Part shown: piece by piece, positions 1 to 53,541 of the stretch
Layout of the letters: each line of letters starts with the position of its first letter
How positions within the stretch are numbered: position 1 is the first letter of the stretch
NCBI GenBank assembly: GCA_977017575.1
Contig: CDRNVI010000002.1
Coordinates: 124,001 to 188,000, forward strand
Length of the DNA stretch: 64,000 nt
Source: Paramoeba atlantica
Lineage: Eukaryota; Protista; Discosea
Direction: 5' to 3'
Notes under the pieces: model-generated
The model's input: the letters and a program-made list of their open reading frames with translations, nothing else
Told to the model about the DNA's origin: nothing
The model's database searches: none
Position numbers and translations under genes: made by a program

Positions 1-274
1 ATTCTATCGAAAACTTGAACGAAGAACCTTTTAACTAGAAAATGTACGTGTAGTTGAAAACTTTTTCGTGTTTTCTTGGCATTCCCATTGGCAAGCTCCT
101 GGCCTTCTTTTTCATCAATTCGTAATGAACCCTCAGAGTCCCATCGCATGAGTCTCCTCAGATGTAGCCTCCTCAGATGAATGGATTAAATTTTACGCTA
201 TACACAAGATATACACTACAAACATACTGTGTAGTCTCCGTACAAAAATTTGTGCTTCGCTTGTTTGTGTACGA

Positions 275-2929: not shown

Positions 2930-3392
2930 TTAAAGTTTAAGAGCCGAATTTCAGTGACGGAAGCAGAATGCCTGATAGCATATCTTACTAAAGTCTAATA
3001 GCTTATCGTACTAAAGCTTAAAGTTTTGGTTCGTTTTACCACAGAACAATATTTAATAGTATTGGATCTGGAATGTGCTTTCAAATTTATACAACAAAAG
3101 TTACGTAACGTACGCTTTGCTAATTTGTCGATGTAAATTGTAGGTGCCTATTAAAGTTTAGGTGCTCCTTAAATATTGCTATATGTCCAGTTTCTGAGAT
3201 GACTGTCCATTTCACTGTAACTTTGCCTCGTCAGTCACCCAACTTTATTATTCGTCTCGTTTGCGTTGTAAAATGGAAACAGAATACAGGATCATTTTGT
3301 ATCTGTTAATCAACTTAAAAGCAAAAATATTTCGCATTGGAACTTACATGTATGTTATAAAAAAAGAACAATAAGGAATAGAGATCGCTACG

Positions 3393-3635
3393 TCAAGTCG
3401 AGTACAAACTAGAAAAGGCCACAATAGGAACAGCAAATCCGGCTGAATACAAAAAATATGAGTTCTCCTTCCAGATACACATGTGTAGCTTTTCCCTGCT
3501 CAGCAAGCAATTAGAATGCGCGTAAAATTTTGTTCCCGGCTCAAGGGAAATTCTTTCAATTTTATTCACTACATTCGTATATGGTTTATATCCGGAAAGA
3601 GACTTGTGGCTTAAAAGGCGTCGAGTTAAATTCAT
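3393..3635 (-). CDS. possible 80-aa small protein (MNLTRRLL... with hydrophobic C-terminus)
   Basis: On the cluster strand in a 1.1-kb gap. Internal ATG gives an N-terminus resembling short kinetoplastid mitochondrial presequences and a hydrophobic tail. No recognisable domain. Confidence 0.25.
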   Translation of the reverse strand: MNLTRRLLSHKSLSGYKPYTNVVNKIERISLEPGTKFYAHSNCLLSREKLHMCIWKENSYFLYSAGFAVPIVAFSSLYST

Positions 3636-4060
3636 TTTGCAAGTGAATAATGGCTGGTCAAAGCAAAATACATCCAAAAAAAGATGCAACGTATATTAGG
3701 GTGCAGGTAAAGAGGTACTTACGGTAGAATTATTCTAGCTTTTTCTATTCGAAAGTCTAGGTCTCTTTAAAACGATATTGACGACGAATGTGCTATATTA
3801 TATACAAGTTGTATTCAATAAACTTATGTGCAGCCAGATTTATGCATAATTATCCAATACACGTGGCGAGAAGCAACATGTACACCCTTTACAAGTCTTG
3901 TATTTCGTACGATTTTGGAAATTAACCAAAACAATATTTAACGTCGTTTAATAATCGTATAAAATCGTGTGATACACGGATGCGATGTACATTTATCGTG
4001 AGTTCCACACGATCGACGCGAACGTACAGGAGGCGTGCGGAACAAACTGCTAAAAAAATA

Positions 4061-6796: not shown

Positions 6797-6889
6797 TTAC
6801 TAAACGATAAAAGGTCGCAAAAATATGACAAAATGGAATTTAAAAAAGTGTCGACGCTATAACCCTACGGATGTACTTGAAGCACCATA

Positions 6890-6991
6890 CACCCCCCAGT
6901 AACAGGCCCCCTCAGCAACATTTTATTAAATTTAATATTTAATATTAAATAATAATTAATATTTAATATTAATTTACATTACTGGGGGGTA
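6890..6991. repeat. small inverted repeat around an AT-only core (micro-MITE-like hairpin)
   Basis: ACCCCCCAGTAA (6891-6902) and TTACTGGGGGGT (6979-6990) are perfect reverse complements and bracket an almost pure A/T stretch. Confidence 0.55.
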
Positions 6992-7114
6992 TAGGGTAGT
7001 ATGAGAAGCAACAATAAAGTCCAATAAAGTTGAGAGTTAACAGCTAAACCCCACTTCGAGACTTTAACAGTAGATCCAGCGATCCGCTTGTTTTGAAATT
7101 TGTACGCTCTTCAA

Positions 7115-9769
7115 TTAAATCTTACCTGCTTTGCGAAGTTGTGAAACTAAGGCTTTTGCACTTTCCTTCTCTGGGGGTAATAAGCAGTGACGTCGCATGT
7201 GAAGCTCATTGATAAGCTCTTGTAAAACGATTCCTGGTACATCACCTAAGTTAATATTGTAACAGTCATGTAAAATTTGTAAAATATCGGACACGTGCAC
7301 GGTGCTCACAGGAAACATGTGAAGCTTTCGCACAATGCTGTGGAACACTCGATGGGGGTCGTTGAGTACCCTCCACTCTAATAATGTAGAGTAGGAAGCT
7401 AGCATAAAAAACGTCATGCGTCCCGTAGATTCGTTTTGCTCAAGTCTATGGCACACCACCTCAACAAGTTTTGCAATGAGAGACCCCTGCGGCATGTTGG
7501 CAAGTGTCATTGAATATAAAAAAGTAGAACCACACAGCGTGTTAAGTGAATCAGCAGACAGCGCAACATTTCTAAAAATGGCGCGCAGTTCTGCGGAAAA
7601 GCCTCCCAGTTTTGCCATTGTTAAGGAAATTAGAGCTAAATCTTGTGCGTCACGTTCCTTGTACGCACAATTCTTTAGAAGTATGCGTGTCGCTTCACGA
7701 AGGTACTGAATGGAAAGCTCTGTTTCGTAGTTTGCCGTAGGCTTGGAGGAAAATTTGGGAGAGTCTCTTCCATGAGCTTCGGAGAGCGACGTGTGGGTGT
7801 AGCGCACTAAATTGGCTATTGCAATCACAGCTCGCGCATTCTGTGATGCAGTTAGCATGCCTGAGCATTGTACTACCCGTTCCACTAGATTCCGTACGAT
7901 TTCGGCAGGTACTAAAGCAAATGGGTATCGAGCTACAGAAAGCAAAACGCTTGCTACTGTGCGGTGCTCCGTGGGTCCCACAAGATAGGTATCTGCGAGG
8001 GAGAGAAAAGCCTCTCGATAGTTGATATGAAGCCGTAGCATTGCGTTGAGCGCTGCAGCGCAATCCATAGGCCCCGGTCGCTTCTCGCTAAGTTCTTTTA
8101 CCAGTTTACTTGCGAGCTCGTGATTGACAATATCCGCGCGGGCTGCGGATACCAGTGCCGTGAGAACTCGACCTGTGTCCGCTGCGGAGAGTCTCTCTTT
8201 TTGCATGTCGAGCGCGGAGAATAAAACTTGCCATGCGGCTTCTCTAGGCGGGAGACCGATTTCCGTAAAGGCCAAAAAGATACCCGTAAGAGCGGGAGCC
8301 GACAGCTGGAAAGGGTTGTTCTCGAATACGGGACACAGTGCGACCAACAGATGACGTGCGGTATTATCAAAAATTTTAATAAACCTGACGAAAGTGAAGA
8401 AGTCTTGAACGTTGACTGTGCGCAGAAGAGAAAATGATTTTTCCGCGTCTGCAAGGAGCTCTTGCATGCGAGCTATGGCGATTTTAGCCAAAGCTGGAGT
8501 TTTTGGGTGTGACATGTACTTAATAAGGGCCAAACAATATCGGGCAAGATCGGAAAACGAAGAAAGAGAGATTACGTCTCCTAAGTTGTCAGATAATATT
8601 CCAAATGTCGCTTCATCCTTAACACCTACGGCAGTAACTGCTTCAAGGGTGCTCTCAATATCTTGCGAAGTAATCACTTCTTCCGTTCCGCGACGTATTT
8701 TTTGCCACATATCTCTTGTGAGAGTACGATTCCCCACATAATTTCGCGTAAAAGGGTTTAAAATAAAAATAACTTTCGGAAGCGAAAGGTCAGGATCGGA
8801 ACGAATACGACTCAAGAGCATGCGGTCGACAGCTTCGTCGCTCACGCCCAAAGCAATAGCGGAGGCAAGGGTTGTGATACAATCTGAGACTTCCCAAACT
8901 TCGCTCTCCATCTCTAGCAACTTGAGGTACAAATTATTCATTACCGCAACGTCAATGCGTAGTCGAGCCCCGCAAAACATCGCCTCCACTATACAAACGA
9001 AAGGAAGTTTCTTGTACTTACGAATGACCTCAACGGACATCAAGTAAAACTTATGCTGCAATTCAGGTTCGGAGCTTGCAAATGGGATGGCGCGCAACAC
9101 GATGAGTAAACCTTTGCTTCGGAGTTTACTAAACATGGCGCTGGCAGAAGCAAGTTCTTGAAACGCTTGGACGAAATGATCACTTGTTGTGCAGCGTGTT
9201 TCGGTCAAGGCCCGAATCTGACGTAGCATGAGACCGAAATCGTTCGGTACGGGGCGCAAAGGCCATAATGCGTCGACGACCTGCGCAGCCCATGGTGTCG
9301 CTCTTATAGGCTTAATTTTCCCCAAATATGTAAGAATTTTCTCTATATCAGAGGGCGAAAACAGTGCGACACTGGTGATCACATGTCGCAGAGTTTGTTC
9401 ATATACGGTGCTAGAAACAAAACCAGGAAGGTGGACAAACGCGTACAGGAGATTGAGAAGTTCCTTCGTATCGATACAAGGGAACAATGCGAGCTCTGAT
9501 TCAACCCTGTGTTGAATATTTTGAAGCAGGACACTATGAGTGGCATACATGTTAGCACATGCAACGAGAACATTAACACAATCGGAGCATGTAAAAGGCG
9601 GATGTTTCAGCAGAGCACTTTCCACCCTCCGGGATTCTGCAATGGATATTTCTTCCATTTGAGCCAAGTCACAGAAGGCAGAGCGCAGGTGTTGCAGCGT
9701 TAAAACGTTAGGTTGTAGTGCCTGACGGCGCAGCATTAGAAAAACCGCGGCGCCGCGCCGCTGTGACAT
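7115..9769 (-). CDS. 884-aa helical-repeat protein, HPR/OPR-like
   Basis: 36-38-aa units, e.g. WEVSDCITTLASAIALGVSDEAVDRML / LSLPKVIFILNPF / ITSQDIESTLEAVTAVGVKDEATFGIL / RDAQDLALISLTMAKLG. Arg-rich N-terminus. Confidence 0.62.
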   Translation of the reverse strand: MSQRRGAAVFLMLRRQALQPNVLTLQHLRSAFCDLAQMEEISIAESRRVESALLKHPPFTCSDCVNVLVACANMYATHSVLLQNIQHRVESELALFPCIDTKELLNLLYAFVHLPGFVSSTVYEQTLRHVITSVALFSPSDIEKILTYLGKIKPIRATPWAAQVVDALWPLRPVPNDFGLMLRQIRALTETRCTTSDHFVQAFQELASASAMFSKLRSKGLLIVLRAIPFASSEPELQHKFYLMSVEVIRKYKKLPFVCIVEAMFCGARLRIDVAVMNNLYLKLLEMESEVWEVSDCITTLASAIALGVSDEAVDRMLLSRIRSDPDLSLPKVIFILNPFTRNYVGNRTLTRDMWQKIRRGTEEVITSQDIESTLEAVTAVGVKDEATFGILSDNLGDVISLSSFSDLARYCLALIKYMSHPKTPALAKIAIARMQELLADAEKSFSLLRTVNVQDFFTFVRFIKIFDNTARHLLVALCPVFENNPFQLSAPALTGIFLAFTEIGLPPREAAWQVLFSALDMQKERLSAADTGRVLTALVSAARADIVNHELASKLVKELSEKRPGPMDCAAALNAMLRLHINYREAFLSLADTYLVGPTEHRTVASVLLSVARYPFALVPAEIVRNLVERVVQCSGMLTASQNARAVIAIANLVRYTHTSLSEAHGRDSPKFSSKPTANYETELSIQYLREATRILLKNCAYKERDAQDLALISLTMAKLGGFSAELRAIFRNVALSADSLNTLCGSTFLYSMTLANMPQGSLIAKLVEVVCHRLEQNESTGRMTFFMLASYSTLLEWRVLNDPHRVFHSIVRKLHMFPVSTVHVSDILQILHDCYNINLGDVPGIVLQELINELHMRRHCLLPPEKESAKALVSQLRKAGKI

Positions 9770-38763: not shown

Positions 38764-39034
38764 TTAGTGTACAAAGTAAATAAAAAAATGAAACCGACTT
38801 AGGAAGTAGAAAAAAGCTTTAACTGCAGGATAGCGTCAAAATCATAGGCTGAAAAATATTTACCTACCTCAAACTTTGGAATTGCATTGTATTTTATGAA
38901 TGTATTCAACAACAACTCCTTTTTCAAAATTCAGACAAGAAACATGACGATTTGTTTTCACATACTCTTCATCACTCAAAGTATTTCGATACCTTTTTCT
39001 TTCTTAGCTTCACACTCTTCCCTTTTCCTCGTAC

Positions 39035-39946
39035 TTACGCCACTTGGGCCATGCGATTCTTCAAGCTTTGGATCTTTTGACGCACCGTGTTCTTGCGATC
39101 CTTGAGCGTGCGCGGGCGCTTGCGGTAGGACTTGGGCTTGTAGTCCGGTGCCTTCGCCTTCGCCCCCTCCTTCTGCTTCTTCTTCATCGGGTCCGCACGA
39201 ATCTCGGCATGGGCCTCACGATACATCCCCTCCAGCTTATCCGCCGTGATCCCTTTCGCCACGTACCGACTAAAATGCGCCTGGTACCGCGCCGGGTCCT
39301 CCTGCTGCAACTTCTCCATGTACTTCGCCACATGGAGGCCAAAAATCCGCTCCCGGTGCACCTCCCCGTTCAACGTCTCACTCTCCTTGTCATACCCCGG
39401 GAACCGGGTCTCACTGTGCGGGACGTTCACCCCCCCATCCACCACCCCTTTCATTACGCCAAACACGCGGGCGCCGGTGGTGGTCCGGGTCAGCCCGGTG
39501 TCCAGGATCGCCTTAAACGGGCGCCGCTCCTCCGCGCGGGTCTCCTCCTCGGGGTTGTAATACCCCCCATCGGGGCCGGTCACCCCGAGGTAGTCCTTAT
39601 CGAGGCCGAAGTGCGCCAACGTGCGGCGGGCCAGCAGCAGCCCGGTGCAGTAGCACGCGGCGTAGTTCGTGAGCCCGAGCTCGACGCCGTAGGCCGGGAG
39701 CTCGTGGGCGTAGGCGGCCGCGACCACGCGGTCCCCGGTGAGCGTCGCGGCACAGATCTGCGCCACCACGTCGGTGTTGGTGATGCGGGCGACGAGACGG
39801 TACTTCGGGGTGTTGTACTTGGTGCGGTCCTGGAGGACGAGCTTGCGGCGGGCCTGGTAGTCGGTCTTGCCCTCGCGACGGCGGCGGTACTTGACCTGGT
39901 AGCGCTTGAAGTAGGTGGAGTTTTTGACGACTTTGACGAAGACCAT
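39035..39946 (-). CDS. RPL5: 60S ribosomal protein L5 (uL18)
   Basis: [34 protein letters not shown]...[18 protein letters not shown]...[27 protein letters not shown]. Confidence 0.99.
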
Positions 39947-40086
39947 GGGGAGGGAGGGAGGGAGGGGGTGGAGGTGAGAGAAAGAGAAGAGAAAAAAAGG
40001 GTGAAGAGGAGGGAGAAAAAAAGGTGAGGAAGGGATGGAGGGTGGGTAAGGGTGTAGGGGAAATGTTGTGTGGAGGGAAAGGAATA
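39150..40086. other. GC-skew-switch island 4 (switch near 39600-39700)
   Basis: RPL5 third positions go from C-ending (GTC, CGC, ACC, GCC) to G-ending (GTG, CGG, GGG, GCG). No C on + from 39945 to 40086. Confidence 0.8.
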
Positions 40087-40256
40087 CAAATACAGGGTTT
40101 TTGATTTGAAATGTTTTTTTTCTATTTTTGAAGAAAGGTACATATTAAGCTTGTATACAAAGGTTTTGAGTTCAAAAGCATACAAACGTTTTGTGGATGG
40201 CCACGTTAGCGTGTGCGTTGGTTGGCGGATCCATCTGACCCACAACATGAAAATCC

Positions 40257-41123
40257 TTAGGTTTGATTCTCATCCTGCTTGTGATCCTCCGTAGAATCGT
40301 GCGCGTGGACGGATTTTTTATCGTTTTCAAGTGGGTTGTCTTCCTCCTCATGTGACAACTCTACTGAAAAATAGGAGGACACAAAGTGAGTTAGGAAAAG
40401 AATTGCTCCACATCCTAAAATGCGTAGTTCATTTCCGCTGTATGGGGTTCGGCTGGTATTTGTTGTGGAGTAGGGTACGTAGTGAGCCTCTAACCTCCAT
40501 TCATGAGACTTAGAGAGCTGAGATTGTATCTGCGGAAACTCTTGGACAGTAAAATTGCGGTAGGATTCTGGAAGCATGGAAATAAACTCCAACACAGATG
40601 ATGTCGCACTTAGACACAATACTGATGATCCACAACGAAAAAGTGCATTGCTCCACGCACGAAACTCGCTTTTGAATTTCAAAAAGAGATATTCATCAGG
40701 CTCAATATCTGGAGGTGCCCTCCGAGTTTCCTGACTCCGTATCGGGTGTAGCCAGCGTTGCCACAATGTCAATTTGTCACGTCGTATGGTTTCTATTTCC
40801 TCGGGATGGTGGTATAAATAGATGCTCCAAAGGAGAGGACACAAAACGTTCTCGAGGTATGATAAATAAATAATGGCGATACCTGTTGCACCGAAGAGGC
40901 GTCGCGCAATTTCTTCGATGCCTACCAGCGATGCAGAACGAGATGCAATGGAGATAGAGGGATCGTTATGCGGAGAACAGTGAATCGTGTAACAAAGATT
41001 TTGTACAAGAGAGAACCAACTCGCAGCTATTGTTGCTTGCGGGGACAAATATCGTATGGTGCCGTATTTCGAAGAGCTATCTTTAACACTGACACGCGGT
41101 GGTAAATGTAAACCACAGTTCAT
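40257..41123 (-). CDS. hypothetical protein with short hydrophobic segments
   Basis: About 288-aa ORF from the first ATG (MNCGLHLPP). No family recognised. Confidence 0.65.
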   Translation of the reverse strand: MNCGLHLPPRVSVKDSSSKYGTIRYLSPQATIAASWFSLVQNLCYTIHCSPHNDPSISIASRSASLVGIEEIARRLFGATGIAIIYLSYLENVLCPLLWSIYLYHHPEEIETIRRDKLTLWQRWLHPIRSQETRRAPPDIEPDEYLFLKFKSEFRAWSNALFRCGSSVLCLSATSSVLEFISMLPESYRNFTVQEFPQIQSQLSKSHEWRLEAHYVPYSTTNTSRTPYSGNELRILGCGAILFLTHFVSSYFSVELSHEEEDNPLENDKKSVHAHDSTEDHKQDENQT

Positions 41124-41668
41124 ATCGTATTGTAAGGATGATGAAAAAGCAGTCACTAAAGCCGTTAGGGATGAGTAATATACGTACTAGAGGAGACTAT
41201 AGTGCAAATACGTTAGTTGTCTCTAATTTCAAATATTGACCGTTACATGAGAATATTATTAGATTCGTGGTGAATTGCATTGCATGTGAATTTGGCTTGG
41301 TTTCAACGTGAACAGCTATGATTTAAAACTTAAAGGCAAACCTCGTTAAGATTCATATTTACGATACTTGTGAATGGTAAGAAAAGACGACAACCCACGA
41401 ATATTATTTTGCAAATGGGTAAACAACTTCTGCACATTATGCAAAGACTAAATCAGGTTAAATTCCGTCCTATAGTTTGAGATAAAAAACATAAGTACAT
41501 ACTACATATCTCGTTGCACCTTTGTCCTACATGAATGAAATCAAAATGACCATAGATTCTTGTTTGTATACCTTGACGTAGAAATATGATGAGAGCACAT
41601 AATTCCAGATAAATAATCAAACCCTAAAAAGATTTCGTGCTCCATTTTACCCCTTGTCATTTCCTGTC

Positions 41669-42019
41669 TTACTGCTCCTCACGCGCGGCAAGACGTGCGG
41701 CGCGTTTCTCCTTGTCCACTTCGTAGAGCTCCTTAAACTCAGGGGTTTTCACAACCCACACCTGCAGACGGCCTACATCCCGGCGCGCATCCTCATCCTG
41801 CTCATCAACACGAGAGGTGCGAAGTTTGGTAACTTTGCAGTAGCCCGAGGTGCAGAGAATGTCAGCAACAGAGGCAACGCGATCGACACTGTAGCCAAGA
41901 CCGCTGATAACAATTTCCTTCTCGCCCTCGTCAAGGAGTCGCTTGATGACAGCCATGTAGGTAAACAGAGGGCGTCGGGAAGACACGTTGACCACGTTGT
42001 TCGGCTTGGTAGCAGACAT
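41669..42019 (-). CDS. ALBA: Alba-domain RNA/DNA-binding protein (kinetoplastid Alba1/2 type)
   Basis: NVVNVSSRRPLFTYMAVIKRLLDEGEKEIVISGLGYSV..VASVADIL....KVTKLRTSR. ATG at 42019. Confidence 0.85.
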   Translation of the reverse strand: MSATKPNNVVNVSSRRPLFTYMAVIKRLLDEGEKEIVISGLGYSVDRVASVADILCTSGYCKVTKLRTSRVDEQDEDARRDVGRLQVWVVKTPEFKELYEVDKEKRAARLAAREEQ

Positions 42020-42547
42020 AGAATAAGAGTTAGGTGAAAGGTTGGTAGAGGTATAGAAGGGAGATTTAGTAAAAGAATTCTGATCCAAAGTAAAGGCTAT
42101 GCTAACTGTGGAAAGCAAAAGGGGCTAAGAATAGTTCTTTCAGTCAAACTTAGAGGGTCAAAGTAGGTAGTATGAGCAAAAACCAAAAATAAGAGTATGC
42201 ACGGATAACAATGTACGTTAGAGTTTATCTTTTTCTAACCGTACTCTAAAATTGTTCATTTATGGAAACAAATGTGGTAGTAAACTAACGGCAATGGTGA
42301 ATTTTTTTTAAAGTCTTTTTTTTAAAACGCGGCATTGCCTCTATATTTTTACCCAGTAGACGAACCAAGTAGGTCCATTGGGGGGGTACATATATGGTAG
42401 GATATGGTATATACCTATGGTATTTATATATGGTGAAAATAAGGGTAAAAAGACAGATAAAACAGAAACAAAATTCTATGAGGCTCAAAAAGAGTAAAAC
42501 ACAGTTGTGAAAAACTAAAAATTATTGTGCAAGATCGATTTCATATT

Positions 42548-45500
42548 TTATAACCCCAACAAAGTTGGCAGTGTTTTCCATCCTTCGGCAAGTGAATATC
42601 GGATACTTGTGCGTACATGTTCCGCCAACTTTTTATCTTTAGTATTAAGCCAAATTGAACACTCGTTCGTGATATATGAAACATTCTCATCAAATTCAGT
42701 AGAAAGCAAGAAATGGCGCCATAAATATCCGACCAACACGGAAACAACTTCATGAACTAATGCTGAAAATAGAACGTCGCATCGAAATCCGGACGGCTCT
42801 GATTTCATTTCTTGATTCGCAGAGCTACGTTTTTGTTCTATGCAGTCAAGCCGTGATTCAGAATCGTTCGTTTTCACAGGGTATACATTCCTTGTGTGAC
42901 ATTCCCGCAACCCACGCATGGAAAAACAACCTCCGGAAGGAAGATACAGAAATAAAGGTTCATCAGGATCAGAGTTGGTGTCTGTAGCACACGTAAGAGA
43001 TGGCCAGCAATACGGGTTAGTAGTGCTATTCCGCGAAAATGATGAAATAAGACTTTTTAACACAGCAGGCTTCAATTTTGAGAAGTAAAGTGCCAGAAGA
43101 GATCTTCGAAGCCAGATTTCAAAAGATTCATATTTTCTAACTTGTCCTGAGACATCCAAAGCAGAAAAAGTTTCAAACAAAATATCGAGTTCAACCCAAT
43201 TTCGTTCATCAGGGATCGAAACGTCACAGCGTTCGATACACGAATCCTTTCTACCGTAACTCACAGTACTCATTTTCTCAGGGGTGGGTGCAAACTCGAG
43301 TCCTTGAAGTAGACCTACATTTTGTGACATGAAGGGTACAAAATATATCGATTTCACGGAATTTTGGAAAGTACACTTACCCACCGGAATTATGGATGGA
43401 GAAATAGAGGTGCTAAAGCGGGTTGATGTCTGAGAATTACAAGCGTCATTGTATGCGACTAGAAGATTGGGAACTTCGAACAATTTACTTTTCTCCCCCA
43501 CCTGCTTCAGTCTTGGGCCGGGATATGCATCCCTTTTAGTCTCAGCGCTTGTACTCTGTAGAAAGTGACGACGTAGTACGGTATCGTAAAAACAAATAAG
43601 ATCAGCGCTCAAGGAACAGCCTTTTAGCGCACGCTGCAGAAGAACTCTCAGAAAACAGTTGGGTGTAGAAGTGCGCACTTGATGAGCTGATTCTTTAAAG
43701 CGTTCATCTGTGTGAGTGGTATCTTTTCTTCCGTGTCCTATTGTACCAGGTAAAGTAATATAAAAATCAGAAGAAATACATCTTCTCGCGTTGTCATCTC
43801 TAGAAAGATATCTCCCTATGTAACGCAATATTGCAGTAGCCAAGTCTAGTCCCTGATCACTCGCATTCCTAGTAGACATCATTCCTTCTCGTATAGTGCT
43901 CTTGACAGGACACGTCATTCGCCGACCACCAGCTGCGTTTTGAGGCACCGAAAGAGGAGAAAACTCTTTAATGGAATTAGTAGAAAGATCAATCATGTCC
44001 AAAATATCACACGGCATACAAAGTAGAACTACGCATCCCGTAGCCGCCGAAAAAGTAGAACGAAGACATGATTTTTGAGAATAATCTGAAGTTTTTCGAG
44101 CAACATCCCTCTCAACTCCTTCCAGTTCACTGGAACGCATTGACACATTCGAATTAGTTGGTGCACAAGTGGAATTGCACGGATAAATCTCTGGAAGAAA
44201 ATCAAGAAGTTTTTCGTAGGCACTGTTCGAAAAACAGCTACGGACGAGGTCTTTACTCGTGTCGTACGGCTCATATACAATAATGAATCGCATCGCTCTG
44301 GAATTACACGTAATCTGTTGAAATATATTTAAAAGATAATCAGAAAAACCCTTGCGCTCGTAGACAAGAAAGCGATCATTCTTATTATTGGACTCCCGAG
44401 TGAAAGGACAATCGCTTAGTTTGATATTTTGAGACCGGTTGCTGCGGGCACAGCGAAAATTCGCAAAGTTCGATGGTTCGCCGATAAGATTTTTAGAAAG
44501 TGCGCATCCTGGACGACAGAGAAGTACTTCATACTGCTCCATCCTTTCCGTCGAACCTGCGCCGTCAAACTTCTTGGCAGCGTAGAGATGAAGAGATCTC
44601 TCATTCCACCTTGAAGATGTGAATGAATCAAGTCCCAAAGCAACTTTGAAAAAGGGAATGGCTACGTGATTGAAAAACTCGGTAGACCAAATTCCTCCCG
44701 AGCAGAGAGTAAGCTGAAGCACTGCAGAATATTTGCAGAACGAAGTAAGATTTCGGTGTTGAATCGGCAGCGATGCCGGGAGCCGAGAACTAGGCTGATT
44801 AGTCTGCAAAGCCTCCACACGCAAGGTAGGGTTACCCCTCGCGCGGTATTCGCCACCCGAAAAGATCTTTGAAACAAAGTCGAGATCAAATAAGAGTGCA
44901 GAAGGCGATATTTCTTTTGCCTTTCTTAACTTCCTTTCCATCCTTGACAAGAATTCACAATCGTCCTTGCTTTTTTTCTTCGAACGTTCAAACGCTTTTT
45001 TCAATATTTTCGTAGTCATAGTTTCTATGTCACATTCTCCTGAAGGGGCACAGCTTTGGCTTTTATGCAATCGATATGCTAATACGCAATCCATACGCGA
45101 GGAGAGAACACGAAGTTGATGAGAAGCATGAGCGAAATGAATTTGTGCGTAAACCATTTTCTTCAACTGCTCAAGATGACGAACCAATGCGTCTGAAATA
45201 CATTCTTTGGCAGTCGAATACGTTTCGCCAGTAGAAAGTTCATGCCCCCCTAAGACATATGAGGCGAAATTCACGTCCCAGACCCTACCTCCATGCAGGA
45301 AAAAATAATCTAGTCTAAGTGGGGTCCAAAGAAAATGCAATAAACTACGTAGGTTCGTGCCTGCTATAACCGTGCATGGTGTCAACAGAGATTGTAACTG
45401 TTCACTATCCTTCGATGCAATCGCAATTTCGCTAATCTTAATTTGCAAAACAGTGTTCTCATTACTCAGAACGACCAGCGTAAACTCAGGATTAATTTTC

Positions 45501-47251
45501 TGCTTCCCTTCCTTGTCCGTGCAATCATGCTTCTTTTGTAGATATACAACTAGTAAGTTACTATAGGCGAGCAATTCCTTGTCTTGCAGTCTGCCTCGAT
45601 CAGACTGCATCCAACTCAAGCGAATGTATTCCATAAATGCAGAAGCATATTGATCTCGATACGGTCGAAGCTTTCGTGTGGATGGAAACATGGAACTGGA
45701 ACGCAAAAGCTTACGGGGATTCCCCATGGCTTTCGTAAGTTCCTTTTCCGGAACTTCCGAACACTGTTCAGAAATCGTTTCTTGATTTGCTAGCGTTTCC
45801 TCCAATGCAGGCTCTGAATAAACAGCTGCAGCGGCTTGCCTTTGAACGCATTCATATTGGGCATGTAGAATACGGTTGGGCGATACAGCGCAAGACAATT
45901 TTTTCCACACGATCTGAGCGTGCATAAGGGGATTGGGATCCAATTGAGCTTTCCGGGCCCTCTTCCCAGGCAAGACATTAGCACAATCGGTTGTGATTAC
46001 ATTGTTTGTGCTTGACACACCTTCAAAATCGCATTGCTTAGTGTGCTTCAAGGGTTCGGCCTTCGCCTCTTCTACATTTCTTTGATGTTCAAGTTTAGCA
46101 TCAGATGAACACAAAGAGAATTTCATCCCTGTAGATGGTGACCACTGCCGATGTTTGTGTCCCGCTTTTAGATACTGTGAGGCAGCCAGAAAGCGCTCTA
46201 CTGGAAGTACATGTAACACTCGAAAGATTGTGTGTTCGTTCAACTTCTGCACGATGCCGCCAATTTCCCGTACGTCAACGTCTTCGCAAAAGATGGGCAA
46301 TTTTAAAGGATGAAACTTAGACTTCTCGTCCTCTTTTGTAATAAAACCTCCACAATCTGCGGAATCATGTTTCGTATCATTTTGGGGGAACGCGCCTTCA
46401 GCTGTATCCACTGCCGCAATTGGAATCAAGACTATATTACACGGCACTGTATATTTAAGGCGCAAACATTCGTAGACTTGTGCAACGGCACCGCTGAAAT
46501 TCGATTTCTTTTCTACTATATCGGCCTTTTGTGGAGAGGAGCCGTGAACTAGAGTGCCTTCAGTACTGCCTTCTGACAAGCGGCGGTACCGGAATAGACA
46601 TACGTGTAGTGGCCACCAAATATGACTGTAAAATTCTCGATCAGTGAATTTCAAAGCGCGTACTAAGCGGGCAATTATTTCAGCTTTTTCGCGTGCTGTG
46701 GTGTCCAGGATAAAGTCCTGAGAAAAGTTCGATTTTTGCAACGGTTGTTTTTCTTGTTGTGCACTTGATGGAATGTTATTGCAGTTGACTGTTTCGGTCG
46801 AGTTTTCTGCACTACTTTCTCCTATATTGTAACCGATACCCGGGGTTGGTTCGACTATTTGATCTTTCAAATTCTCCAGCGGACGATTGCCCTCCATGAT
46901 TTCCACCAGAAGTTTCACTTTGCTTGGTAGTTCAGACTTTTGCTGTACCATTGTGAAAATATCTACTAGAAATGGTGTTTCGAGAAGAGAAGCTGCCGTA
47001 ATAACTGGACTCCAAATTTTATACGGCAATATCATGGCTGTTGCACCTCTCGCATTCATTGCTTGACGATGTATCCATTGTTGAACAGCACAAACTGTAA
47101 GCTTCTGAGAAACATTAAAAACAAAGCTTTCTTGAGATCTAACGTGGTGTACAGCCATTTCACTCGGGTTTTTGCCATTCCACCCCAAAGTAAATATCGT
47201 TGCCGTGGGTAGCATTCCTACTCGGAACCTCTGCTTTTGCCCTCCGAACAT
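42548..47251 (-). CDS. highly degenerate relative of kinetoplast DNA polymerases Pol IB/IC/ID, catalytic motifs lost
   Basis: Exonuclease-region signature VIAGTNLRSLLHFLW...FFLHGGRVWDVNFASYVLGG...AQIHFA...QLRVLSSRMDCVL and C-terminal HEVVSVLVGYLWRHFL...YITNECSIWL. These align by recall to GHNIKFDLLYLW / FLxRGGRVWCTMxAEYLL / RMDGLL and EIVQxMLGRLWRHFL...NTVHDCVW. Confidence 0.7.
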   Translation of the reverse strand: MFGGQKQRFRVGMLPTATIFTLGWNGKNPSEMAVHHVRSQESFVFNVSQKLTVCAVQQWIHRQAMNARGATAMILPYKIWSPVITAASLLETPFLVDIFTMVQQKSELPSKVKLLVEIMEGNRPLENLKDQIVEPTPGIGYNIGESSAENSTETVNCNNIPSSAQQEKQPLQKSNFSQDFILDTTAREKAEIIARLVRALKFTDREFYSHIWWPLHVCLFRYRRLSEGSTEGTLVHGSSPQKADIVEKKSNFSGAVAQVYECLRLKYTVPCNIVLIPIAAVDTAEGAFPQNDTKHDSADCGGFITKEDEKSKFHPLKLPIFCEDVDVREIGGIVQKLNEHTIFRVLHVLPVERFLAASQYLKAGHKHRQWSPSTGMKFSLCSSDAKLEHQRNVEEAKAEPLKHTKQCDFEGVSSTNNVITTDCANVLPGKRARKAQLDPNPLMHAQIVWKKLSCAVSPNRILHAQYECVQRQAAAAVYSEPALEETLANQETISEQCSEVPEKELTKAMGNPRKLLRSSSMFPSTRKLRPYRDQYASAFMEYIRLSWMQSDRGRLQDKELLAYSNLLVVYLQKKHDCTDKEGKQKINPEFTLVVLSNENTVLQIKISEIAIASKDSEQLQSLLTPCTVIAGTNLRSLLHFLWTPLRLDYFFLHGGRVWDVNFASYVLGGHELSTGETYSTAKECISDALVRHLEQLKKMVYAQIHFAHASHQLRVLSSRMDCVLAYRLHKSQSCAPSGECDIETMTTKILKKAFERSKKKSKDDCEFLSRMERKLRKAKEISPSALLFDLDFVSKIFSGGEYRARGNPTLRVEALQTNQPSSRLPASLPIQHRNLTSFCKYSAVLQLTLCSGGIWSTEFFNHVAIPFFKVALGLDSFTSSRWNERSLHLYAAKKFDGAGSTERMEQYEVLLCRPGCALSKNLIGEPSNFANFRCARSNRSQNIKLSDCPFTRESNNKNDRFLVYERKGFSDYLLNIFQQITCNSRAMRFIIVYEPYDTSKDLVRSCFSNSAYEKLLDFLPEIYPCNSTCAPTNSNVSMRSSELEGVERDVARKTSDYSQKSCLRSTFSAATGCVVLLCMPCDILDMIDLSTNSIKEFSPLSVPQNAAGGRRMTCPVKSTIREGMMSTRNASDQGLDLATAILRYIGRYLSRDDNARRCISSDFYITLPGTIGHGRKDTTHTDERFKESAHQVRTSTPNCFLRVLLQRALKGCSLSADLICFYDTVLRRHFLQSTSAETKRDAYPGPRLKQVGEKSKLFEVPNLLVAYNDACNSQTSTRFSTSISPSIIPVGKCTFQNSVKSIYFVPFMSQNVGLLQGLEFAPTPEKMSTVSYGRKDSCIERCDVSIPDERNWVELDILFETFSALDVSGQVRKYESFEIWLRRSLLALYFSKLKPAVLKSLISSFSRNSTTNPYCWPSLTCATDTNSDPDEPLFLYLPSGGCFSMRGLRECHTRNVYPVKTNDSESRLDCIEQKRSSANQEMKSEPSGFRCDVLFSALVHEVVSVLVGYLWRHFLLSTEFDENVSYITNECSIWLNTKDKKLAEHVRTSIRYSLAEGWKTLPTLLGL

Positions 47252-47634
47252 ACGTGTATGAACTTCCGATAGAAAACCGTAGGAAGGCAAAAGGCACTTG
47301 TTGTATCGAATTTTTACCTCTTATGTGAAAGATTTAAGCATAATTATTGCAATTCTTCTTATTATCTTCTTCTTCTTATCTGACAGTCATAAATATACAA
47401 ACACGCATAAAGATTCCTTTACAAGCCTTGTCGAAATGAGTTTTGCAAGTGAGATTTCATTGATGTTCGAATACATGATATGTACTGATGACGCCCCTCT
47501 AACACTGTCAAAATATTCAAAAGTAAAATGCATCAAGGGAGTAAAGTATTCTCAGATACTTAGAAGAGCATGTGGCTAAACACCACGAAGGCATAAAACA
47601 CAATGCATATCACAGAGTATGATTGCCCGAAATT

Positions 47635-49188
47635 TTATTGAGCTTCCGTCTTGAATGACGAAAACCAGGCACGCGCCGTTGTAAGAAGTTCCTGACATCT
47701 GCAAACCTCCGAAAAATTAGGACGATGTGTCCGAACAGGAATTGTGTGAACTCGGGGATCGCTTAGTTCAATCGGACAACCTGAATAGCGCAAAATATTA
47801 CGGTTTGCCGGACCAGGAACGCCTAACAGAAGCAAAGAACACTTTTGAATGTGTTCCCCCCATTCCTCCAATGTTGTACGGATATCTTCAATCCAACGTG
47901 TCTCTTGGCTTCGTCGTATTTGAGTCCCCGCACTACGGCCACAGTGACCTGCACTGGACTCATGAGTGCTCTGCCTACCGCCTTGCCCTTTTCTAACAAC
48001 GTAGCGCTCAAAAGTTCGATGAACATGACAGGTCTTTCCATGAAATATCCCTCCGGAAAAATAACCCCCGTGAAATAAAACAATACACCAGGGAGAGGTA
48101 CTTAGCTCAGAGAGAGTTGAAAACAAATCAGGCAACTTGGGGTTCTTATCGGCGTGTAATTGAGCATTTACTTGGCGTAGATACTCTGTCTGAGTCAAAC
48201 ACTTAACGTCCTCGTGCGCTGCTGCATTGTACAAGCTGCTGCCTTCTTCTATTGGTGTGTAAGGGTCGGTACTATTGTCGATCGATCTAGATTTATCATT
48301 TTGAGAAATGCCTTCTAAGTTCGTGTCGCTTTCTCCAGGACTCGAGTAAGAACTCTGAAAACACCTCTGCAATGCGATACGCAACAAAAAAGTGTGGAGC
48401 TCTAGAACAAGAATATATTCTCTAGCCTCGTCTGCATTGGGAGATGCCAGATCACTCAATACACATACAATTTGCTCTGAAATCTCAGATGAAGCGCTAA
48501 TATCAATTCTGGAATTAAGTGTAAAATAGCAACGAATTAGAGCAGAATCTGTCACTGCCTCTACGTGACTCAAAGCCTTTATAGAGTGTACTGTACCTGC
48601 AGAATCGCGTATATAAATTTGATTATCATGATCAGGTAACGTCTGTTTACATCTAATGTGACTCGGGCTCCATAATCCCCACAAGGGAAAAACTTTTCTT
48701 GCACAATCGTTTTTCTGCGCTAAAATGTCGAGAAAAGATTTATGCATGTGTGGTCTAAGGTCCGCTTTTCCTTTAAACGGAGATTCAAACTCATAGAGAG
48801 GATGTCCCCTATCGAGTTTGTTCGTCGAATTGTCTGTTTGTAAAAAATTGTGAGCAGTGGTTCTTTTCTGGTTTAAAGCGTGTTGATTTTTAAGACTTTG
48901 ATTTTGGAGCAGCAGCTCCGCGGTGTCCGTTCTCTCTCTTAAACCGGCACGTTGACCTTTTTTTAGATTCCTGGCTTGCCCTGCCTTTTTTCGCGACAAT
49001 TTTTCTTCGGTCTGTAGGCGTTGAATAACCTCCCGGTCTTCTTCGGTCATAATGTTTTCCGTATGTGTTTGAGCCACACTTTTATCGAAATCAATTGCGG
49101 AAGAAAGAGAGGTACGTGACGCTTGCTTTGCTGCTTCATACTTTTCTGCCAAAAGTTGGCGCACTTTTTGAAGCTCAGTCCAAACCAT
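47635..49188 (-). CDS. VMS1: Vms1/ANKZF1-like protein with C-terminal VLRF1 (eRF1-like) domain
   Basis: WCIVLFHGGYFSGGIF...HRTFERYVVRKGQGGRQS...SAGTQIRRSQE...DPRVHTIPVRTHRPNFSEV. First ATG at 49188. Confidence 0.82.
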   Translation of the reverse strand: MVWTELQKVRQLLAEKYEAAKQASRTSLSSAIDFDKSVAQTHTENIMTEEDREVIQRLQTEEKLSRKKAGQARNLKKGQRAGLRERTDTAELLLQNQSLKNQHALNQKRTTAHNFLQTDNSTNKLDRGHPLYEFESPFKGKADLRPHMHKSFLDILAQKNDCARKVFPLWGLWSPSHIRCKQTLPDHDNQIYIRDSAGTVHSIKALSHVEAVTDSALIRCYFTLNSRIDISASSEISEQIVCVLSDLASPNADEAREYILVLELHTFLLRIALQRCFQSSYSSPGESDTNLEGISQNDKSRSIDNSTDPYTPIEEGSSLYNAAAHEDVKCLTQTEYLRQVNAQLHADKNPKLPDLFSTLSELSTSPWCIVLFHGGYFSGGIFHGKTCHVHRTFERYVVRKGQGGRQSTHESSAGHCGRSAGTQIRRSQETRWIEDIRTTLEEWGEHIQKCSLLLLGVPGPANRNILRYSGCPIELSDPRVHTIPVRTHRPNFSEVCRCQELLTTARAWFSSFKTEAQ

Positions 49189-50491
49189 AAGGAAGTAAAT
49201 CTGCTGGATGCTAATGAAGACACTATTGTTTGTAAATATGGGATATACCAAGACAGGAGCGCACGCTATTCATGACAAATCAAACTTTGCGCACAAATAC
49301 TATAATTTTGGGTACAGATGGTTCAAAAAAAGAGTTTAGAATTTGATATCGGAGCTCTCAAGCCTCAAAATCACATTTTTGATGTACTTCAACAATTGCG
49401 TATAATCTATACGTAATGGTTTCATAATAAAAAATTTAAATGGTTCTTAATATGGTTCACAATGGAGGTTCCGGGGTCGAGTGAAATTACAATCACCTCT
49501 CTAAAAAACTCTAAAAACACCTTGATTCACTCTAAGCATGTCACTTCAACTTCTTGACTTACTTGCTTCTTGAGAAATCAAGTTAGTGTTGTTCTTCTGT
49601 TGCATAGGATGAAAAATGATCAGAAATGTCATCAAATCTTCAGCGACACCTTCCTCACCAGGCGATGACCCAGATTGGACATTGATTCCTCCATTGACTC
49701 CAGCGAAAATTCTCTAATCAGTGAGCATAAATGGAGTGGAGACGGGCTTGTGGCGCACGAGCAGTCATCTGGTAACATATAGGCTCGTAGAGGCACTAAA
49801 TAGAGGCACTACGTTCGTAGAGGCACTAAGATCTCGGAGAGGATGGAGCGTCTATGAGGACACTGCAAAAATAAAGGCAAACGTGTAATTTCGGTCGAAG
49901 TGAAACTAGTATGAACCCCTCTCTTCTCAGGAAAACTATGATCTTGTGGAGGATGAGTTCATAGGCAAAGGTACCACACAAGAAACGGAAACCGCCCGTA
50001 AGAAAGACGACCAGAGGACTCCACCTTGGCGTTCCGGCCTACAGAACCTCCGTACTAACCCCCCCACAGACTCATTAATTCATGAAAATACTGAAAATAA
50101 TACGCTGGCCATCCCCGAACTCACATCTAATGAAGTGCGGAGAAATGAAACAATGGAACGCACTCTTCGTAGGCGAATCGAACGCCTGCAAGAGAAACTA
50201 CGTTTACGTATCCAATAACTAAACCTTGTTAGCCGCAGCGGCAAGCAAGAGGCACGGTATGAAGAGCTGACCTACTTCTTCAAAATCAAAGCATCAATTT
50301 ATTAGTATTCCAATAAACCGTAAAGACGCTGCTTCTGCAAAATCTACACTCTTCAACGCTAGTAGTTTAAAAAAGACCAAAGGAGCCACTAAAACTAAAA
50401 TTTCTTGGAAAAAATAAAAGAAGCTTTTGGTCAATATTTACTACTTACTTACTACAATAGCAACGGACAATTCATCAATTGGATTGAGACA

Positions 50492-51952
50492 CTACTTAGC
50501 CATTTGGGCGCGCTTGTGAATTACGAAGGGTGGAACGCCACGTACCATTGGCTTTTTCCCAGATACAATATCCAAAGCATGTAAATCAATATAGGGAATC
50601 GGATGTTTCGGCAAGAATGCAAACAATGATTTCGCGTTCCAAGTGCTGCTACAAACTGATTGAATCCCATCTACAGACGCTTTAGTGATACCCGTCCGGG
50701 CCCTTTCAGAGGGGCGTGCAGAAATGCGCACTTCTTCATTCTTCATTTCCTCCTCGGCTCGCATGTCTTCTGGTGGTCGCGATGAAAAAGAGAAAAATTC
50801 ACTCGAGCTCCCCAAAGCATCACAGTTTCGACGATCACGATCTTTTACCTCGCTCTTCCCCGCGTTTGCAGACCCAATCGTTTCCCCCTCAACCCTATCC
50901 ACCTCATCCCCCGAAACGTCACACAAATCCACCGTTCGGGTAACCCCCACCCCCTCCACCTGCCCCACCCTCCCCTCCACCCACTTCGCCGCCTCCAACG
51001 CCGCCCAATCCACCGCAGACCCTTTATCCACCGCACACAACCTCTCCCACCTCACCGCCTCAACCACCGCTCCCCCACCCCCCCTTCCCCCAATCCCCCC
51101 GATCGCTCCCCCACCCCTTCCCACCCCCTCCCCTCTCTCCTCCCCCCTCTCTCCCCCCGAACCTCTTCTTGTCCCGGTTCCACGTCCCCCTTCCTCCCTC
51201 CCCCCTCTCCCTCTCCCTCCCCCCACCCCCACCCCCACCCTCAAATACCCCCACCCCCCCTCCCCCCCTCCCACGCCCCTGCACCGCTGCATCGTGCGCT
51301 GCACCGCACACACCCCCGGGTGGGTACTCCACCACCACCACGAGCCCCCCGACACCCGCACGGCCCCCAGCGGCGTCGTCGGGTCATCCACCACCACCAG
51401 CAGGTCGCGGCAGCCCAGGTGGGGGTAGGCCGTGAGGAGGGCCTCGAGCGCGGGGTCCGGGGACCCACCGGGGAGAGGGGACAGCGGACGGCTGTTGTCG
51501 TTGTGGTTACGGTTGTTGTTATCGTTGTAGGGGTAGTAGTTCTGAGGAACCGTACTGGCCAGTACCGCCGCACAGGATCCCAGGAAGGGACAGAAGTAGC
51601 CGTGAAAGGGGTAGGGGGGTTGTTGGGGGTAGGGGTGTTGGGGTTGTTGTTGTTGTGGTCCGGGGGAGAGGGGGGGAGGGAAGGGGTATTGGAGTTTGCG
51701 TAAGGGGCTGTCGAGGGGGAGGGGTTTGAGGGCACGGGGGTGGGTGCGGGTTGGGGGATTTGTTGTGGGAAGTAAGGGGTTGGGGAGGGTGGGGTTGTGA
51801 AGGAGATCCCAGGGGTGGGTGTTGGCGTGGAGAAGGAGACGGAGGGCGGTGAGGGCGCCGAGGGAACGGGTGGGGTAGTGGTGGGGAGGGGAGGTTGTGG
51901 GGGAGGAGGTGCCAATACCGTAGACGAGTTTGGTGAAACGGGGTTCGGTCAT
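50492..51952 (-). CDS. hypothetical protein, Pro/Thr/His-rich N-half and Gly/Glu/Val-rich middle
   Basis: 486-aa ATG ORF on the cluster strand whose composition tracks the nucleotide skew. A 5' duplicate at 53556-53696 keeps the same start and frame. Confidence 0.6.
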   Translation of the reverse strand: MTEPRFTKLVYGIGTSSPTTSPPHHYPTRSLGALTALRLLLHANTHPWDLLHNPTLPNPLLPTTNPPTRTHPRALKPLPLDSPLRKLQYPFPPPLSPGPQQQQPQHPYPQQPPYPFHGYFCPFLGSCAAVLASTVPQNYYPYNDNNNRNHNDNSRPLSPLPGGSPDPALEALLTAYPHLGCRDLLVVVDDPTTPLGAVRVSGGSWWWWSTHPGVCAVQRTMQRCRGVGGGEGGWGYLRVGVGVGGGRGRGGREEGGRGTGTRRGSGGERGEERGEGVGRGGGAIGGIGGRGGGGAVVEAVRWERLCAVDKGSAVDWAALEAAKWVEGRVGQVEGVGVTRTVDLCDVSGDEVDRVEGETIGSANAGKSEVKDRDRRNCDALGSSSEFFSFSSRPPEDMRAEEEMKNEEVRISARPSERARTGITKASVDGIQSVCSSTWNAKSLFAFLPKHPIPYIDLHALDIVSGKKPMVRGVPPFVIHKRAQMAK

Positions 51953-52030
51953 GGGGAGAGAGGATGAGGGAGGGGAAAGAGGACGGGGGAAGGCGCCATG
52001 GGGGGTTGAATGTAAAGGAAGGAGATTTAC
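50860..52030. other. GC-skew-switch island 5 (switch near 51420)
   Basis: Extreme C-runs 50880-51400, extreme G-runs 51420-52020 on +. Confidence 0.88.
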
Positions 52031-52299
52031 TTTTCCATCTGTTTACAAAAGTTTTTGATAAAACAATCTCTTACATTGCTTTTTTACGATATTCTTATGG
52101 AATGGTGGTTTATTAGAAATTGCATCGGATGCCCAGCAAACCTGTTGGCAGGCTATCTCTCTATTGCCAGAGTGGAACACGTGCGTATCAATTTGCGACG
52201 AATATGAATTGAACACTGGGAATATCCTACCGAAGGAGAACAACACAGGTCGTTGATCAGAATATGAGCGTACACTGGTTTCGCTGAAGGCGAGTACTC

Positions 52300-53150
52300 A
52301 CTGCGCCGAGCCTAGAAGACCCTCAACCACCATCCCCACCGTGCGACAACAGTTTCATACGATGGACCAACTCTGCCAGGAATTTCCCCCGGACTCAGCC
52401 CGCTCGGTCTTCAGCAGTGAAGGGGGGAGCCGGAGCTACCGCACCCTCCTTCCGGCTTGCGCACTTCAATAGGAACTCTCGTCCTTGTCGGAGCGCGAGG
52501 CCTTAATGAGGCGCCTGCTTACCATGGAGGCGGTGTGGGGAGCATACGTCGTCCAGAAAATCTGCAAGGCGTGCATAGCCCTCCTCAATGGGCCCACCTT
52601 CGCGGGGGAGCCCAAGGTATGTGGGGCGGCCCTGGAGGCTTTAGGATAGTTAAAATACCTAAGGTTGCGGCTCAACGCGACCAAATGTACGCTGGCCACG
52701 CGCCAACGCAGCCTCCTCTCTGAGTTCTCACAAACCAGAATGGCGCACTCCCCCGGAGGGGTTAAGCTACTAGGGGCTGTGAGACAACCATGGGGAAGGC
52801 CCCGTCAGCAAGAAAACTAGTCTGCATGAGGCAGATACAAAACGTTAATTACACCAAGCGGATGAACCCGTAGCCCAACAGGCGGGAGCACTATACGTGA
52901 TCCTATATGGGAGACACCTGCGGTACCGGGTTGCCCTGACATCCAAGCCTGAGCTCCAATACGTGCGCGGCACAACCCTTTGAAACGAGAAGTTCTGTGT
53001 TCATGCACTGCATTGCAAAAAGGTGAGAGGGAAGACCCACCTTCTAAATTAGAAGGTGCCATTAGACTAATGGCAATAGGGGTGGTCATTCAGAAGGGTA
53101 ATGCCCAGATCGTACAGGCGGCGGTTTCAGGACTGGTACCGCCGCGGGGT
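52300..53150 (+). mobile_element. degenerate CRE/SLACS-clade non-LTR retrotransposon relic
   Basis: One frame gives MDQLCQEFP...ALLNGPTFAGEPKVCGAALEAL...LRLNATKC (52671-88)...GGVKLLGA (52755-78) with two TAG stops. Later, IRLMAIGVVIQKGNAQIV (53061-53114) resembles the CRE terminal RLSVALQRGNA motif. Confidence 0.5.
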
Positions 53151-53541
53151 ACTATAACTGGGCGAGGGGTTTGGGGGAGTGACGAAGAATTCCTAATGAA
53201 TTCGAAGGCTCCTCTTCCTTCTACGGGCCATTCTTCAACTCACATCCTTTTTTTCGCCGCGTATTGCAGATCAGGAGCAAGCATGACGAAACAATTATCG
53301 GCGCGAAACAATCGGCAGAGGCATGTCAATGTTCATGCGAGGAGTAAGGTCGGAATTTCATCAGAAAGTGTAAATAAGCAAGAAAATATCCTTGAAGCGA
53401 TTCGCTGTGCGAGCGAACTGTTTACAATGGTACCGGTTCTTGATGCAGCAGAACAAAATGACGAGGGCATACTTTCCCCTGAAAGTGGTGATCAGCCCTT
53501 TGTTTTGTAAAAGACTTCGTATTAACCACCAGTAGATAAGT

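Follow-up and report, generated by a model that had tools for sequence, protein, structure and literature searches.

Several family A DNA polymerases of phage origin copy the unusual mitochondrial genomes of kinetoplastids and their relatives. PolIBCD+ is a clade of mitochondrial polymerases in the Kinetoplastea (Harada et al. 2020, PMC7238167), and Trypanosoma brucei POLIC is reported to have a polymerisation-independent role in the distribution of kinetoplast DNA (kDNA) (bioRxiv 10.1101/730523; PMC9731263). Trypanosomatids also contain prozymes, dead paralogues that partner active enzymes, as in AdoMetDC (PMC5201418) and PRMT1 (bioRxiv 10.1101/776112). No catalytically dead member of PolIBCD+ was found in the literature that we searched (PMC7238167 and the available parts of PMC7883662 and PMC10877234), a limited search that is no proof of absence. 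Here we describe a 1567-codon open reading frame (ORF) on the minus strand of a 64,000-nucleotide stretch of DNA, referred to as the window (positions 124,001 to 188,000 of contig CDRNVI010000002.1, assembly GCA_977017575.1, deposited as Paramoeba atlantica), the predicted product of which is built like a kinetoplastid POLID polymerase with altered active sites.

Profile comparisons show that the ORF product is related, at a considerable distance, to the POLID-like (PolIBCD+) family A polymerases of kinetoplastids and that, within the Pol IB/IC/ID group, it is closest to the POLID architecture; the residues at its catalytic positions indicate that it very probably neither polymerises nor proofreads. 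We therefore favour, with moderate confidence, the reading that it is a lineage-specific and extremely diverged POLID-like pseudo-polymerase that selection has kept open for a non-catalytic role. The product retains the family's order of parts, with an N-terminal block, an exonuclease fold, a long middle, and a palm helix followed by the motif C hairpin. The features are as follows, in window coordinates.

42548-47251, minus strand: the whole ORF, 1567 codons plus stop, with its first ATG at 47251 and its stop codon at 42548-42550.
47206-47251, minus strand: residues 1-15 (MFGGQKQRFRVGMLP), a short, basic, acid-free N-terminus, read directly.
46946-47200, minus strand: N-terminal POLID-type block, residues 18-102 (FTLGWN...QQWI...ILPY), from hhalign.
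45077-45631, minus strand: 3'-5' exonuclease-like domain (DEDDy, PF01612-type), residues 541-725, from hhalign, hmmsearch and AlphaFold2 (AF2).
45536-45544, minus strand: Exo I position, where the family D-x-E is Y570-L-Q572 (hmmsearch alignment and translation).
45338-45358, minus strand: Exo II position, residues 632-638, where the family HNIKFDL is TNLRSLL and the Asp is L637.
45176-45190, minus strand: Exo III position, where the family Y-x-x-x-D is A688-L-V-R-H692 (hmmsearch and translation).
44852-45034, minus strand: putative start of the polymerase domain, residues 740-800, from MAFFT (weak, and not significant alone).
42824-44851, minus strand: middle region, residues 801-1476, the expected place of the thumb, motif A, fingers and motif B, with no family similarity detected.
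44075-44086, minus strand: an isolated DYSQ, residues 1056-1059, the same as the start of motif A and out of context.
42563-42823, minus strand: C-terminal palm block, residues 1477-1563, with the LWRHFL helix, the motif C beta-hairpin and a closing helix.
42650-42670, minus strand: motif C position, where the family T-V-H-D-C-V-W is T-N-E1530-C1531-S-I-W.

A hidden Markov model (HMM) of the family, made from 42 relatives, scores the ORF at 55.6 bits (E 1.7e-19, as a single comparison) in three collinear domains, and the best pairwise relative, the 1496-residue protein P0048 of the same genome, matches it in three collinear blocks (phmmer). An exhaustive HMMER search with residues 368-1567 against 1.84 billion representative proteins gave seven matches, three of which are pieces of the ORF's own gene and one an artefact; the three real ones are P0005 (E 2e-4) and P0006 (E 8e-4), both of them family A polymerases with Pfam DNA_pol_A (PF00476) and a 3'-5' exonuclease, and P0007, an exonuclease fragment. 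When the search is seeded with P0006 it leads to the named POLID and POLIC proteins of trypanosomatids and Bodo, to diplonemid polymerases and to phage relatives. The artefact, P0004 (E 2.5e-11), contains cadherin repeats, seven of which each add a weak match. A feature search of the ESM-Atlas gives scores of 0.77-0.81 toward exonuclease families, which serve as a lead only. The relationship to the kinetoplastid Pol IB/IC/ID group was first proposed in an earlier note on this DNA and is borne out by the family HMM and by the hhalign match of the exonuclease domain described below.

It could be argued that the ORF is a fast-evolving orphan with a chance likeness to polymerase motifs. The whole ORF has no match to any family in a Pfam hmmscan at E<=10, DNA_pol_A included, nor in NCBIfam, nor among PDB sequences at E<=10, and a word-indexed search of 5.8 billion proteins was empty; moreover, apart from pieces of the ORF's own gene, P0004 is the only match that the exhaustive search gave at E<1e-10. 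Nevertheless, such an origin is hardly credible, because three separate collinear blocks match one and the same family, the AF2 model of the exonuclease domain matches both DEDD nucleases and family A polymerases, and the single sub-threshold match in PHROGs, at residues 613-671, is in the same place and is again to a DNA polymerase, that of a phage. Of the profile comparison with DNA_pol_A that the earlier note had suggested, the Pfam part thus came back empty, while the family HMM and hhalign gave a match.

The N-terminal block ties the ORF to the POLID-like proteins. It matches the N-termini of 19 POLID-like proteins (hhalign 88%, E 2.9e-6) and residues 228-280 of P0048 (phmmer independent E-value 0.0015), and its LFTLGWN string is common to the Trypanosoma POLID rows of the alignment. 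In the phage relatives of the set the sequence starts at the exonuclease domain and this block is missing, so that the ORF derives from a eukaryotic POLID-like lineage rather than from a fresh phage acquisition. POLID and the group of P0048 and P0047 (EukProt 'PhF_6') have the same order of parts (FTLGW...W[IM]...P, the exonuclease with GG-x-W-D and RMD, LWRHF, and the motif C hairpin) and a comparable length (1496-1720 aa, against 1567 aa for the ORF). They differ from it in that the ORF has replaced the DEDDy residues and the His-Asp of motif C, has no recognisable DYSQLEV or motif B helix, and lacks the approximately 180 residues that precede the shared block in P0048. Matches to POLIC (phmmer) cover only residues ~612-779 of the ORF. 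Its first 15 residues are a possible short mitochondrial presequence, to judge from their composition; short presequences are known in kinetoplastids. Four other POLID-like proteins that we considered (P0008, P0009, P0011 and P0046) come from other samples and not from the ORF's genome.

The exonuclease domain is supported by an hhalign match over 185 columns (97.1%, E 5.9e-11), a hmmsearch domain E-value of 3e-14, and a core in which the AF2 confidence (predicted local distance difference test, pLDDT) is mostly 70-90. Structural alignment with VIA places it with E. coli RNase D (Z 11.7, root-mean-square deviation (rmsd) 3.3 over 151 aligned residues) and NrnC (Z 11.0), and Foldseek, which together with AF2 the earlier note had named as the structural check, returns REXO2, RNase D and Pol nu. 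From both alignment and model, the RNase H-like DEDD fold is judged to be kept in residues 541-725. All five of the DEDDy catalytic residues, however, are replaced (Y570, Q572, L637, A688 and H692). A similar situation is found in Pol theta and Pol nu (PDB 4xvk, 8e23), which are the top structural matches to the ORF model and in which the DEDD fold likewise persists as a structural module with its catalytic residues lost. The polymerase domain of Pol theta and Pol nu is active, whereas in the ORF the polymerase active site would be lost as well.

The C-terminal palm block (hmmsearch domain E 3e-5; BLASTP E 3e-5 to P0048) contains the motif C region, and residues 1440-1536 match the corresponding region of the family with an hhalign E-value of 2.7e-4. 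Both AF2 models have a helix, a beta-hairpin and a helix here at pLDDT 70-82, with the turn of the hairpin at E1530-C1531. Where the family has TNTVHDCVW the ORF has ITNECSIW, so that the His-Asp is either E1530-C1531 in an ungapped alignment or is deleted in the gapped alignment of HMMER. VHD is present in 45/45 relatives checked, and all 44 of those in which both motifs could be located keep DYSQ and VHD, 204-223 aa apart. At the start of the polymerase domain, MAFFT sets CDIETMTTKIL against the family CTTEMEFNGL, and FSGG against FGG.

The short strings on which the earlier note had based its proposal are all where it put them and align with their family counterparts: GGRVW (residue 654) with RGGxIWD, RMD (719) with RMDGL, LWRHFL (1510) with LWRHF, TNLRSLL (632) with the exonuclease HNIKFDLL, and ITNECSIW (1527) with TNTVHDCVW. 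Its statement that no motif B is recognisable is likewise upheld, as none was found by profile; that there is no DYSQLE motif A is right as regards the collinear position, although the isolated DYSQ at 1056-1059 had been overlooked. The claim of catalytic death stands for the five exonuclease residues and for the His-Asp of motif C; for motifs A and B it amounts to their being unrecognisable, which is short of proof.

Between the exonuclease domain and motif C the sequence has diverged to a point at which no similarity can be detected. Nothing in residues ~800-1480 is significant against the family using hmmsearch --max, hhalign or hmmalign; no DYSQLEV motif A is present at the collinear place, no part of the ORF has a profile match to the motif B O-helix (R..AK.F.F.R.YG), and the AF2 pLDDT of residues 801-1476 is mostly 30-50. 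From the end of the exonuclease to the motif C block there are ~715 aa, compared with ~640 in P0006, and the length of this middle region is one that, on alignment, fits the order of parts in the family. We examined several candidate positions for the missing motifs. A motif A near residue 903 (TERMEQYEV; hhalign E 0.16) and one within 1308-1343 (hhalign E 0.97) are not significant. A length-preserving MAFFT alignment, persuasive to the eye, sets N1297 against the Asp of motif A and E1360 against the Lys of motif B, with motif B at residues 1356-1374, but neither placement is better than those of shuffled sequence: in 200 shuffles of residues 1205-1480, each realigned as the original had been, the highly conserved columns had 13.4 +/- 2.8 identities, compared with 14 in the real sequence, and the real profile score fell below the shuffle mean. 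Because the MAFFT alignment is matched by shuffles and the other candidates are not significant, no placement of motif A or B is accepted.

The isolated DYSQ bears on a different possibility, that the protein is still an enzyme, using non-canonical residues (for example Asp1056 of DYSQ together with Glu1530) or having acquired a new activity. The rough chance expectation of this tetrapeptide is ~0.008 per protein of such length and composition, a Glu adjoins the position of the lost motif C Asp, and the frame has been maintained. Retained or new catalysis nonetheless seems quite improbable. DYSQ occurs without LEV and without the preceding strand; it lies 474 aa from motif C, more than twice the spacing in the 44 relatives; it has no profile support (a BLASTP comparison with motif A of P0006 gives E 2.1); and its chance probability rises to ~0.1 once the other motif tetrapeptides that might have been noticed are counted. 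There is also no recognisable helix with the Lys and Tyr of motif B, and the five exonuclease residues have become non-acidic or hydrophobic. DYSQ 1056 was for these reasons of spacing and profile support rejected as motif A.

The extent of divergence is seen in a maximum-likelihood tree of the exonuclease domain, in which the end branch of the ORF is 5.46 substitutions per site and the ORF falls in no supported set; the highest identity to any member of the tree set is 29%, to P0048. With a branch of this length the ORF is not assigned to any of the named subclades (B, C, D, Perk, dipl). The whole ORF is covered without a gap by Logan contigs from two separate runs, X1 (depth 27) and X2 (depth 49), in which one study sequenced the same organism, as the earlier note's uninterrupted 1567-codon frame would require. 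A stop codon is found in frame 13 codons upstream of the first ATG (the mechanical ORF has 1580 codons and starts at TTG), and a coding-frame codon signal, for which 17 other genes of the window served as the training set, is above zero in 15/15 windows of 100 codons. That a frame of this size has stayed open through saturating divergence argues that it is not a long-standing neutral relic, and would suggest that the protein is made and selected for a purpose other than catalysis.

The same locus is present in the ENA long-read assembly ERZ24900291 (contig ctg3991l, here L001) at 99.86% identity, where the gene call is split into parts of 806, 146 and 581 aa. The split is caused by two one-base indels, an extra G in a G-run at window position 44839 (codon 805) and a missing T in a TC-rich stretch at 44523 (codon 910), corresponding to L001 positions 8414 and 8729, with 0 substitutions across the 4.7-kb ORF. 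At both positions the X1 and X2 contigs agree with the window and not with L001. Given the gap-free contigs, the types of site affected and the lack of substitutions, we take the L001 indels to be errors of long-read assembly, and the intact frame of the window is probably correct. L001 and the window do not differ evenly along the locus: 14 substitutions and several indels fall at 38831-41004 (~2.2 kb, covering RPL5 and a neighbouring ORF, ORF299), and the ~12 kb at 41005-53251 have none besides the two indels in the ORF, as if one of the assemblies had switched haplotype or strain.

Several observations weigh against the reading of a selected pseudo-polymerase. One public assembly of the locus, L001, carries the two frameshifts. 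No orthologue of the ORF was found among the 1.84 billion representatives, in the 5.8-billion word index or in the JGI metagenomes, so that conservation of the dead state cannot be shown; a search for syntenic orthologues by way of the neighbouring VLRF1 gene gave two distant matches only, and L007, the locus of one of the two, is not syntenic. Among the RNA runs none was found that holds the ORF. All four substitutions in the X1 and X2 contigs are non-synonymous (I132R, N156K, T305P and R770K), whereas in the neighbours RPL5 and ORF299 all six positions at which L001 differs from the window are synonymous (Fisher's exact p = 0.005, for small numbers and with the two counts taken from different pairs of samples); this suggests weak present-day constraint, or diversifying selection, at the level of residues. 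The description as a dead polymerase is founded on motif C together with the loss of recognisable motifs, A and B being unlocated. Finally, the two AF2 models are of low confidence overall (mean pLDDT 49 and 48), the C-terminal helix-hairpin-helix being the one confident portion of the polymerase part. They are consistent with a palm and fingers fold having been kept, as family A polymerases head the VIA-align list for model 1 (Pol nu Z 14.4, 284 aligned, rmsd 4.1) and account for 50/50 of the matches listed for model 2, which was made without the exonuclease domain (T7 polymerase Z 8.9, 218 aligned, rmsd 5.0), although outside the exonuclease domain these matches are partly circular, since the models are driven by the family A alignment.

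Several of these points would also fit a decaying relic, that is, a redundant duplicate of a polymerase which drifts neutrally and is open only because the loss of constraint is recent. The lack of an orthologue and of an RNA run holding the gene, the contrast of 4/4 non-synonymous with 6/6 synonymous variants, the two L001 indels, and a codon signal that is lower in some of the windows covering the ORF's second half can all be counted in its favour. However, the exonuclease branch amounts to ~5.5 substitutions per site and some 700 residues in the middle can no longer be aligned, yet the frame of 1567 codons has no stop, and neutral drift that far would have closed the frame many times over. 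The X1 and X2 contigs are gap-free, the L001 indels, situated in a G-run and a TC-rich stretch of a 4.7-kb sequence free of substitutions, resemble long-read errors, and four variants are a very small sample. We consider decay unlikely. The strain comparison called for in the earlier note accordingly has a divided outcome, with the frame open in X1 and X2 but with substitutions that point to weak present constraint; its proposal of a new kind of kDNA factor over-reaches for an orphan of a single genome with four non-synonymous and no synonymous changes.

The pseudo-polymerase reading gains a biological context from the other polymerases of the genome, in which an extra paralogue had correctly been supposed. 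P0048 (1496 aa) and P0005 (1108 aa) are encoded in tandem (L002, positions 137-8327, contig ctg3915l of ERZ24900291) and keep DYSQLEV and VHD, so that the apparently dead ORF co-occurs with active paralogues in one genome. Orthologues of P0048 in other organisms are only ~46% identical to it, from which it appears that the lineage of the ORF is thinly sampled. P0005 is itself of unusual construction: its exonuclease region (residues 365-641) has 74% identity to P0048, while its polymerase domain most resembles (31-35%) the PolI-dipl-like proteins of diplonemids, for example that of Hemistasia, a mosaic pattern that suggests gene conversion or a chimeric origin. A fragment of a DDE_3 transposase lies near the P0048/P0005 tandem. 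The ORF could belong to a broader diversification of unusual family A polymerases within this genome.

A non-catalytic role is plausible in view of the trypanosomatid prozymes and of the polymerisation-independent role of T. brucei POLIC. The prozymes resemble the ORF in being dead paralogues beside active ones in the same euglenozoan genome, but they belong to other enzyme classes and are conserved across trypanosomatids, whereas the ORF has no known orthologue. POLIC, a PolIBCD+ member with a non-catalytic function documented for its protein body or uncharacterised region, sets the precedent of a protein that is shaped like a polymerase and matters apart from synthesis; it is nevertheless an active enzyme with motifs A-C intact, none of which are recognised in the ORF. 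By analogy with these systems, the product would most likely take part in organellar DNA replication as a scaffold, as a DNA-binding protein or as a partner that regulates the active paralogues. The more specific proposal, that the product is a subunit imported into the mitochondrion where it serves the active POLID-like enzymes as a scaffold, as a processivity or positioning factor, or as a prozyme-like activator, is offered tentatively.

Nearly all of the long ORFs in the window are on the minus strand with short spacers between them, and this run of genes around the ORF is the layout of a euglenozoan polycistronic unit. The neighbours of the ORF include genes for VLRF1, Ctf4/Mcl1, RPL5, an ArfGAP, a Myb protein, a PPR-methyltransferase, EF1-gamma and a protein kinase; an Rfam scan of the window found no RNA genes. 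The spacer downstream of the ORF (41157-42547) is 1391 bp long, several times the length of most spacers in the run, and is without any ORF of at least 150 aa. At one end of the window are three tandem minus-strand ORFs at 275-2929, 4061-6796 and 7115-9769 (884, 911 and 884 aa), which look like a local tandem gene family; those at 275-2929 and 4061-6796 have no Pfam match. Between 34001 and 38000, in a region spanning the genes for a DSP-phosphatase, the Myb protein and the ArfGAP, the GC skew is -0.21 and then +0.16, opposite and strong, and the GC content is raised to 0.48-0.51.

The division of work among the family A paralogues of kinetoplastids is unsettled, and the ORF bears on this question with a weight limited by its occurrence in the genome of one free-living euglenozoan and by its very fast evolution. 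If it is indeed a pseudo-polymerase kept for a non-catalytic role, then this polymerase family would also yield non-enzymatic parts, the prozyme theme would extend to DNA replication, and the ORF would provide a natural case of separation of function for the non-catalytic roles suspected for POLIC. Should it further be an imported subunit of the active enzymes, it would be the first inactive family A polymerase paralogue dedicated to the replication of organellar DNA.

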